The notes under the pieces: model-generated
Told to the model about the DNA's origin: nothing
The model's input: the letters and a program-made list of their open reading frames with translations, nothing else
The model's database searches: none
Assembly (NCBI GenBank): GCA_977016875.1
Contig: CDRNST010000088.1
Coordinates: 1,178,001-1,242,000 of the forward strand
Direction: 5' to 3'
DNA: 64,000 bases
Source: Pavona decussata
Lineage: Eukaryota
Shown: positions 62,229-64,000 of the stretch, in pieces
Position numbering within the stretch: position 1 is the stretch's first letter
How the letters are laid out: every line of letters starts with the position of its first letter
Position numbers and translations under genes: made by a program

Positions 62229-62754
62229 TTTATCACAAATCAAAGTCAGTCCAAAACCAACAGGTGCAGATAGTTTTTGAATCAGAAAGCCGTACAAGAA
62301 AACGGAGCTACAGCCAAATGATGTTCGAAAACGGAAACAGCAGTTCCTTAAGCCGTCCTACTACGTTTAGCGCCGACTCAGAAAACAAAAAAACAACGCA
62401 GTCGAAATGAAAAACACTGCAACAAACGGTGGGAACAGGGATGACCACAGTCGAATTGTAGGAACAAGTTGGGACACAAAGCCTTAGTGCTAAGTGCTTC
62501 TGTTTCATGCGTCTTGACCAATGTGGAGCGACCTGCACCGTTTGCAGCGTCTCACTGACATTATTGGTCGAAAGAGCAGAAGAACAAAAAACAAAACAAT
62601 GATGCTGGACATAAAAACAATGGAGCTGCAGGTTATTTGGGTCCAGTGATAACAGAGCGGGCTCTGACGAATAATTTGTCTACCAAGATAAATACGGCCA
62701 AGATTATCTCATTGATAAGGCCATTGCATCCCTTTTCCCTGTTTATCAAATAAA

Positions 62755-63018
62755 AGAAAGATCCTCGCAGTTAGTACGCAACTTAAGCAGTCGCGAAAAG
62801 AAAGCCTGAAAAAAAAAAAATTCAGGCTTGAACGGGATTTGAACCCATGACTTCTGCGATGCCGGTGCAGTGGTCTACCAACTGAGCTATCAAGCCAACT
62901 GGGAGCTGGTCATATTGCGAGCTCGTAATACACCCGTGAAGGCAAGATCAAATAGAAGAAAGATCCTCACAGTTAGTACGCATTTTAAGCAGTTGCGAAA
63001 AGAAAGCCTGAAAAAAAA
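62755..63018 (-). mobile_element. tRNA-cored repeat, family A, second locus (tail-core-tail)
   Basis: The reverse strand reads ggcttgatagctcagttggtagaccactgcaccggcatcgcagaagtcatgggttcaaatcccgttcaagcc. The tail agaaagatcctc.cagttagtacgca occurs at 62755 and 62957. Confidence 0.85.
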
Positions 63019-63027
63019 TATAGTCGA

Positions 63028-63325
63028 TATGCCTGCGTCACTTTCTTGAATAATCATCATTCTCATTCATTCACCAGGCTGGAAATATACCATCACATTT
63101 CTCTCATATACTACACGTTCGACATTCAAATCCTAGCAGTATGCAGGATGTTTGTCCCATGAACCTAGTTTAATGACCTTAGCACCCACGAGTCTCCTGT
63201 AGCTCAGTGGTAGAGCATCCAAACTAGTAATCGGAAGGTCGTAGGTTCGACTCCTGATAGGAGCACTCGGATTTCTTTTTTCCGAGTATGCCTGCGTCAC
63301 TTTCTTGAATAATCATCATTCTCAT
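63028..63325 (+). mobile_element. tRNA-cored repeat, family B: 259-bp unit with 39-bp terminal redundancy and a TSD
   Basis: Identical tatgcctgcgtcactttcttgaataatcatcattctcat at 63028 and 63287. Flanking ATAGTCGATAT at 63020-63030 and 63324-63334. tRNA-Thr(AGT)-like core at 63193-63264. Confidence 0.88.
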
Positions 63326-64000
63326 AGTCGATATTGTTTCAAAATTTCGGGTCGGTCGGGCGGAGTCTGAGACAAGAAGACGTAGTAACCTAACATCATC
63401 TGGAAACCTGGTTGTGGTCACGAAATCAAGATGTAAGTTGTGGTCCGAGCTCGCAAGTAAGTAAGTACGTAACTTTATTTCTGTGTCAGACACAAAAGAT
63501 TAGCGGAAGGAAAGAATCCTTCTAATAATAGGGGACACATAAAAGGATAAAATTAAGCAAAATTTCAAAAAACTATTTCATGATAAAAACTAAATATGCA
63601 GATAAGATCAATTTTGAAAGAAACAAACATGATAAGTTAAGAAAACTTCATATATAAAATGACTAATAAATTAAAAATGACAAAGGCAGCAGTTGAAACT
63701 TTCATAGTTAAAAAGCAGCCATATGAATACTAAATAACACAATGCTCCCAAAAGCACGATTTAATTTTATAGTTGTTGGTAAATGCCGCGGAAGGAAGCG
63801 ATCCGCAGAAAGCAAAGATATTTCATACTTAACCTGACTTAAGTCAAAACATAAATTACGAAAAACGTATTGTAATCTGTAAAGAAACTCCCTGGCCAAA
63901 CACTGATCTCTTTGTTAACTTATGAATATTTTTTCAGTAAAACTTATGCGTACGATTTAAACTTACCATACAAGTTTTAGGTACCTTGAAGGGGCAACAG

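Follow-up and report, generated by a model that had tools for sequence, protein, structure and literature searches.

The insert at positions 63020–63334 of the window, by which we mean the whole 64,000-nucleotide stretch of Pavona decussata DNA that was analysed, is most probably (we put the probability at about 0.85) a copy of a young, non-coding coral retroelement family with a 259-bp unit, whose spread depends in trans on a Penelope-like element (PLE). Of all eukaryotic retrotransposons, the PLEs are the class about which least is understood. The small parasites of PLEs known so far, namely the animal retrozymes, have a hammerhead ribozyme and a circular RNA as their defining features. Non-autonomous PLE-dependent elements are already known, in the form of the animal retrozymes and of MRC1 (PMC7229834; bioRxiv 10.64898/2026.07.22.740005; PMC8557442), and we found no description in the open-access literature of such an element which bears a tRNA and is free of a ribozyme.

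Within the window the insert proper (63028–63325) is 298 bp in length and contains 1.15 copies of the 259-bp unit. Comparison of the window with itself revealed an exact 39-bp direct repeat with a spacing of 259 at the two ends of the insert, and the whole is bracketed by an exact 11-bp repeat which overlaps the insert ends by 2–3 nt (Table 1). The unit, the terminal repeat and the target-site duplication with its overlapping ends had been proposed in a preliminary description made from the letters alone; all were confirmed, and both repeats were found to be exact. Its placing of a tRNA-like segment in the interior, followed by a T-run hairpin, was borne out by the Rfam tRNA call and by the predicted stem next to it. 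The layout is not a product of chance, because the 259-bp unit recurs at 96–100% identity across the genome. No open reading frame was found in the unit when tandem units were examined, the longest stop-free run being 58 aa. The window copy is a direct-only member of the family, with the form [1-259][1-39] and an end at the short site S. The left edge of its 5' partial unit (unit 1) is a cDNA stop; on the template the T-run hairpin lies directly 5' of it.

Table 1. Features of the 259-bp-unit insert and of the older element in which it lies (window positions).
Feature	Positions	Strand	Basis or comment
Older Ala(GGC) element, its 5' part being the insertion target of the 259-bp element	62745–63025	-	ARAGORN, Rfam, 79-bp repeat
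Target-site duplication, left copy (ATAGTCGATAT)	63020–63030	.	Last 2–3 nt are microhomology with the insert
5' partial unit (unit 1–39), pseudo-LTR-like	63028–63066	+	Exact 39-bp repeat
'Tail' segment (unit 40–80), between start sites S and L	63067–63107	+	End mapping of loci
Non-coding body (unit 81–165), including the 16-nt motif (63172–63187) and the second 5'-end hot spot (unit 124–135)	63108–63192	+	
tRNA-like core, Thr/Leu-like, degenerate	63193–63265	+	Rfam tRNA, 36.6 bits; ARAGORN on the consensus
Hairpin, stem ctcgga/tccgag, loop formed by the T-run TTTCTTTTT	63266–63286	+	Predicted stem
3' terminal piece (unit 1–39), ending at the short site S (...CATCATTCTCA(T))	63287–63325	+	39-bp repeat, locus comparison
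Target-site duplication, right copy	63324–63334	.	11-bp repeat

In the same genome (602 Mb) at least 173 scored matches to the 259-bp unit, with 96–100% identity, were obtained from 2,419 first-look candidates. Copies of the unit are dispersed over many contigs and also occur as seamless tandem arrays of up to ~17 units. Judged from its sequences the family is young. The unit was re-aligned by BLAST to 35 distinct loci, and these alignments formed the basis of the end mapping. An apparent common 5' start at unit 210 proved to be an artefact of partial alignments in the initial search and was gone once BLAST had been run on the loci themselves.

At the 35 loci the insertions were strings of units with a variable 5' truncation, of the form [x-259][1-259]n[1-38 or 1-80]. 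Two fixed 3' ends were observed 42 nt apart, a short end S (...ATCATCATTCTCA, unit ~38) and a long end L (...CACATTTCTCTCAT, unit 79–82), which have a short motif in common; the 3' ends read ...TTCTCA or ...TCTCAT and stand directly against the target duplication. The ...ATCATCATTCTCA end of the window copy also abuts the target duplication in S-ending arms at other loci. Head-to-head (inverted) insertions made up 24 of the 35 sampled loci (~70%), and in every one of these 24 a single arm ended at S and the other at L, with the 42-nt tail (unit 39–80) present at exactly one end. If the choice of end were free and even, the chance of such pairing at 24 of 24 loci would be ~6e-8. Direct insertions ended at S or at L, with the exception of one locus (L015) at which the match stops at unit 150 and no flank duplication is present.

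AT-rich duplications of the flank were found at all 24 inverted loci, with a maximal length of 11–15 bp (~10–11 bp net), mostly 13 bp, and at five of the nine direct-only loci tested (the tandem array on contig C144 was left out). They include 1–3 nt in common with the element ends. The two arms of an inverted insertion meet with an overlap of 0–7 nt or with filler of up to 20 nt, and this inner junction differs locus by locus.

The 5' ends of 58 arms were distributed unevenly over the unit. Nine lay at unit 1–3, eleven at unit 124–135 and four at unit 157–163, and none of the 58 lay at unit 29–76, 164–180 or 240–259. The hot spot at unit 1–3 is directly 3' of the T-run hairpin, with no ends within the hairpin itself, and the hot spot at unit 124–135 is just 3' of another predicted helix. 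The 5' ends are non-random in the manner expected if a reverse transcriptase moving 5'-ward pauses at the bases of these helices, and the T-run hairpin is probably one such pause site. Small hairpins with loops rich in A and C are predicted next to both start sites, S and L each lying 3–4 nt to the 3' side.

Sequence variants were then compared among the arms and units of single insertions. Both arms carried the same haplotype in 22 of 24 inverted loci, where random re-pairing gave 8.7 +/- 1.9 (P ~0.0002), and the units inside one arm were homogeneous in 172 of 173 site cases. Rare variants were common to all parts of an insertion, as with 9T in all four segments of locus L031 and 147A in both arms of locus L035. 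Each insertion event would therefore copy one RNA species, because arms and units share both subfamily alleles and rare variants. The array of ~17 units (L002, G000:C144:4519322-4523780) contains private variants that return every three units (88G+240G / 194A / none), a pattern that indicates segmental duplication at the DNA level after insertion. Tandem arrays of this kind could supply multimeric transcripts.

We propose that the PLE protein, a reverse transcriptase/GIY-YIG endonuclease predicted to act as a dimer, would cut both target strands ~10–11 bp apart, that each 3'-OH would prime cDNA at one of two internal start sites (S, L) on the element RNA, and that the two cDNAs would run 5'-ward over at least one unit and then be joined by microhomology. 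In the window copy synthesis would have proceeded from S only, through one full unit plus 38 nt, to a halt at the base of the T-run hairpin; the 39-bp terminal redundancy would then arise because this is the distance from start site S (38/39) to the stop at unit 1. The cutting and priming steps are taken from published PLE biochemistry and genomics. Craig et al. (PMC8557442) reported partial tandems of PLEs (pseudo-LTRs) with an adjacent inverted 5'-truncated copy, a PLE tail of 30–40 bp which is often found at one end only, and N-terminal-endonuclease PLEs which are without hammerheads. Frangieh et al. (PMC11167929) found with purified protein that a PLE cuts both DNA strands and extends them, and that reverse transcription begins at two adjacent internal stem-loop sites, the tail being the stretch between them. 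Hammerhead cleavage was dispensable in that in vitro system, which used mainly unprocessed RNA as its substrate, and the authors proposed a multi-copy transcript as the template. With the anole PLE in vitro the two start sites were used without strand preference, and primer and start site had no homology (PMC11167929), which tells against our reading in view of the strict S/L pairing and the usual microhomology in the 259-bp family.

The preliminary description had likened the monomer-plus-a-bit layout to that of Penelope-type elements, and the end mapping strengthens this likeness by adding inverted arms, a 42-nt one-sided tail and duplications of 11–15 bp. It had also taken the insert for a non-autonomous retroelement other than an ordinary tRNA-SINE, which agrees with our finding that copies start elsewhere than at the tRNA and carry no simple-repeat or poly-A tail. 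Of the findings that it had named as grounds for giving up its reading, fixed 3' ends and an integration mechanism that had already been described were both observed; a start at the tRNA 5' end was seen in 0 of 58 arms.

If the insert were a conventional tRNA-derived SINE that is moved by a LINE, with inverted forms generated by twin priming, the tRNA-like core and its apparent A and B boxes would be accounted for, and the variable-length target duplications, the 5' truncation and the microhomology at inversions do resemble the products of L1 twin priming. We regard this origin as very improbable given that the tRNA is internal to the unit and none of the 58 arms starts at unit 164–180. Moreover, the copies lack a poly-A or simple-repeat tail, their two fixed internal 3' ends, which are 42 nt apart, are paired one of each at 24 of 24 loci, ~70% of the sampled loci are inverted and several seamless units are found per insertion, and a run of six T residues separates the tRNA from both 3' ends. 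Spread at the DNA level, either as a satellite through extrachromosomal circles or as a foldback-type DNA transposon with tandem-repeat inverted arms, is suggested by the arrays of up to ~17 units and by the higher-order periodicity of the C144 array. Long inverted arms together with duplications of 9–13 bp also recall the Foldback/Mutator-type elements. Each inverted locus nevertheless has an inner junction of its own, so that a single inverted master was not the source of the loci. The outer ends are asymmetric, with S on one side and L on the other, the duplications vary in length and have microhomology to the element ends, and the 5' ends cluster at predicted RNA helices. Spread by this route is accordingly held to be highly unlikely; the features of the junctions, ends, duplications and 5' stops fit target-primed reverse transcription and do not fit cut-and-paste or circle integration.

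The 39-bp repeat of the window copy contains a 36-bp TG...CA sequence on either side of an internal domain with a tRNA-like sequence, and viewed alone this copy could be taken for a miniature LTR-type element (TRIM, Helenus/Ajax-like). Non-autonomous LTR elements with tRNA-like sequences have been described (PMC10886601). At the level of the family, however, the 'repeat' is only as long as the stretch between S or L and a 5' stop of variable position, and so differs by locus, the duplications are 10–13 bp (maximal length 11–15 bp) rather than 4–6 bp, and inverted arms and many-unit arrays do not fit integrase-mediated insertion. The end mapping across the family refutes the LTR-type assignment, and we give it practically no weight beside mobilisation by a PLE.

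The window copy and four tandem units were searched against Rfam (E <= 10) and only the tRNA was returned, with no ribozyme. As a control we confirmed that Rfam finds canonical type I coral hammerheads, and it missed minimal PLE hammerheads even at E <= 1. Such minimal hammerheads (CUGAAGA, helix II, GAAA) are present in the 3' untranslated regions of two resident PLE copies (L059 and L067). Because the minimal ones are missed, PLE-type hammerheads are not excluded by a negative Rfam result on its own, and for this reason a direct search for the CUGANGA core was added; the core was absent from both strands of the circularised consensus. The earlier failure to see a hammerhead core was thus upheld by both searches. 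The suggestion that the tRNA fold, through RNase P/Z cleavage, stands in for the ribozyme was not: none of the 58 arm 5' ends falls at unit 164–180 (the tRNA 5' end is at 166) or at 240–259, directly beyond its 3' end, and excision by RNase P and RNase Z would leave circles without the tRNA, yet all units keep it. A need for a circular RNA template is likewise unsupported: genomic tandem arrays exist and a PLE used unprocessed RNA in vitro (PMC11167929).

A retrozyme-like cycle without a ribozyme, in which the unit RNA would be circularised and then copied by the PLE reverse transcriptase as a rolling circle into seamless multimers, is compatible with integration of the PLE type and differs from transcription of an array in the form of the template only. 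Several observations are in keeping with it. Private and rare variants are shared by all units and arms of an insertion (172 of 173 site cases homogeneous), arms of two to four units are common even though the source loci in the genome are mostly short, strict use of a single S and a single L per event would be expected if a monomer offers each site once, and the circular monomer folds better than shuffled sequences (z = -3.9). Stony-coral hammerhead retrozymes are known to form circular RNAs (PMC7229834). Against these points stand the lack of any self-cleaving motif (nothing from Rfam at E <= 10, no CUGANGA) and of arm 5' ends that would mark RNase P or RNase Z cuts, together with the removal of the tRNA from the circle that its excision would entail. 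Homogeneous genomic arrays are a possible source of multimeric transcripts, the C144 array exhibits higher-order duplication at the DNA level, and the authors who observed use of unprocessed RNA by the purified PLE in vitro proposed a multi-copy transcript (PMC11167929). The haplotype data fit reiterative copying of a monomer (by a circle or by serial jumps) and a transcript of a homogeneous array equally well. On balance we consider circularisation of the unit RNA possible but rather unlikely. Summed depth of the tRNA-like part relative to the rest was ~20x in three small runs and 2.6x in a larger run, but the contigs are of uncertain kind and this part is common to other families, so that depth cannot rank the parts of the unit.

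EN+ PLEs are resident in the genome. A search yielded 933 GIY-YIG candidates, often arranged as head-to-head pairs, with open frames of up to 1,041 aa and belonging to several lineages. Like the 259-bp unit, these PLEs have a short and a long end. Copies of one of them (PLE family 1) end at ...CTTCTTTTATCA or 85 nt farther, giving an 85-nt tail, the L067-type PLE ends at query 353 or at 418–424, and a hammerhead-bearing repeat has a short end and an end ~85 nt longer. The 3' region of the 259-bp unit was compared with the 3' ends of eight sampled PLE lineages and of the hammerhead retrozyme, a sample that does not include N-terminal-endonuclease PLEs, and gave z <=1.8. No match to the unit was found at the 3' ends of the family-1 PLEs, of seven further lineages or of the L067-type PLE, and the S, L and tail motifs did not occur outside unit copies in the 343 kb of genome sequence searched; these negative results weigh against mobilisation by a PLE. 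A reading of the tail as a hammerhead remnant, which was based on a by-eye likeness (AGGCTGG...AAATATA), was discarded when alignments to eight PLE 3' regions and to the retrozyme were no better than those of shuffled sequences.

The 85-nt tails of PLE family 1 (L051–L062) and of the hammerhead repeats (L082–L090) are alike by eye (...GATCAG...ACGTATACCAGCAGGATTATCGT... and ...GATTAG...ACGTCAACTGACAGCATTATCGT..., respectively). The sequences suggest that PLE family 1 may be the helper of the L082–L090 hammerhead retrozyme family. A head-to-head copy of the 259-bp element (L051:212-765) also lies close to a family-1 PLE copy, ~380 bp from its 3' end; this nearness is probably a coincidence.

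The tRNA-like core of the window copy scored 36.6 bits with the Rfam tRNA model, against a gathering score of 29, and array copies of the unit scored 49.6 bits. ARAGORN called no tRNA on the window copy; on the family consensus it returned a cloverleaf whose anticodon loop is aberrant and whose first acceptor pair is T-C. Sequences resembling Pol III A and B boxes were read by eye in the core, and we interpret 63193–63265 as a tRNA-like relic with apparent A and B boxes and not as a working tRNA. The T-run hairpin looks like a Pol III terminator. A Pol III transcript which terminated normally would lack the start sites, because the T6 run lies between the tRNA and S/L, and the span of a single read-through Pol III transcript was matched by one of the 58 arms (L011, [157-259][1-81]). 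As to what the tRNA-like module does, our guess is that it is a Pol III or chromatin-opening promoter, or else a part of the RNA bound by the helper.

The target of the insertion is itself an element of similar design. A tRNA-Ala(GGC) was called by ARAGORN at 62824–62896 (-) and scored 51.1 bits with Rfam, and the element around it comprises a hairpin whose loop is T12, a 3' region and, upstream, a partial copy (62947–63025) that forms a 79-bp repeat of 90% identity. This Ala family comprises 2,444 candidates of 90–93% identity, with short and long ends (a tail of ~48 nt) and inverted partial copies, and its order of body, tRNA, T-run-loop hairpin, 3' region, short end and ~48-nt tail is that of the 259-bp unit. 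Most Ala copies have a unit of ~250 bp; the copy in the window has a period of 202, with the short end joined almost directly to the next unit and the tail missing, which could be due to a template jump or to a deletion.

A 16-nt motif, ATGAC(CT)TAGCTCCCA, was found just upstream of both tRNA-like cores, at 63172–63187 (+) and 62900–62913 (-) (P ~0.006 versus shuffles). It may be a promoter element or may reflect common descent with a swapped tRNA, and the sharing of this upstream motif by the 259-bp and Ala families suggests that the module has been kept for a reason. Outside the tRNA the motif was the one likeness detected between the Thr-like and Ala families, as neither the hairpin/3' region nor the tail was significantly alike. 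One scan of public metagenomes found no S-tail junction, and a second, made with the tRNA 3' half, found one contig (L103, Ga0099808_1639414, ~680–775) with a related 5'-truncated copy. Over the tRNA 3' half and hairpin this copy has 86% identity, and its diverged 3' region still ends ...CATTCTCAT.

It is conceivable, as a speculation which we consider rather unlikely, that the 259-bp family and its Ala-type and ~250-bp sister families are the PLE counterpart of SINEs. They would then use a Pol III promoter, their unit-length RNA would be copied reiteratively by way of a circle or of template jumps without a ribozyme, and a dimeric helper RNP would obligatorily use one start site per DNA strand.

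A young, high-copy, tRNA-bearing and ribozyme-free family with the scars of PLE integration suggests that a ribozyme is not needed for PLE-dependent spread, which agrees with the in vitro data. The 259-bp family preserves the traces of thousands of recent natural integration events, and it contains a feature that the in vitro system did not reveal, namely the use of the start sites one per strand in 24 inverted events. For annotation it is of practical concern that 259-bp copies can easily be mistaken for tRNA genes, SINEs, satellites or LTR elements.

Among known systems, tRNA-derived SINEs have in common with the 259-bp family a tRNA-like sequence with apparent A and B boxes, a non-autonomous nature and thousands of copies. 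They differ in that the tRNA of the 259-bp family is not at the 5' end, its Pol III-type terminator is upstream of the 3' ends, it has no LINE-type tail, and its insertions are multi-unit and inverted. The Schistosoma Sm-alpha element, reportedly described by Ferbeyre et al. in 1998 as a tandem repeat resembling SINEs in which a Pol III-type promoter is accompanied by a hammerhead, is said to combine a short tandem and dispersed repeat, a tRNA-like promoter region and a retrozyme-like organisation, all of which are features of the 259-bp family; it differs in encoding an active hammerhead, of which the 259-bp family has none.

Metazoan non-LTR retrozymes are tandem repeats of ~170–400 bp with type I hammerheads, found in Acropora, mussel and axolotl (PMC7229834), and it has been argued that they are non-autonomous PLE derivatives (bioRxiv 10.64898/2026.07.22.740005). 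Like the 259-bp family they have non-coding units of ~200–300 bp which range from monomers to long arrays, with duplications larger than those of LTR-type elements, and hammerhead-bearing elements of the coral genome have the same short-end/long-end behaviour. The 259-bp family differs in having no known self-cleaving motif and in carrying a tRNA-like gene and a T-run hairpin in every unit, and the sampled hammerhead family has no sequence similarity to the 259-bp unit. With PLEs and their non-autonomous derivatives (for example Chlamydomonas MRC1, PMC8557442) the family shares partial tandems, an inverted 5'-truncated neighbour and a one-sided tail of tens of nt, as well as two internal start sites by stem-loops, AT-rich targets and signs that both strands are primed. 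Unlike autonomous PLEs it has no open reading frame and no 3' similarity to those sampled, and it carries a tRNA-like module. Relative to the PLE reaction in vitro (PMC11167929), S/L pairing in the 259-bp family is strict (24 of 24) and microhomology of 1–3 nt is usual.
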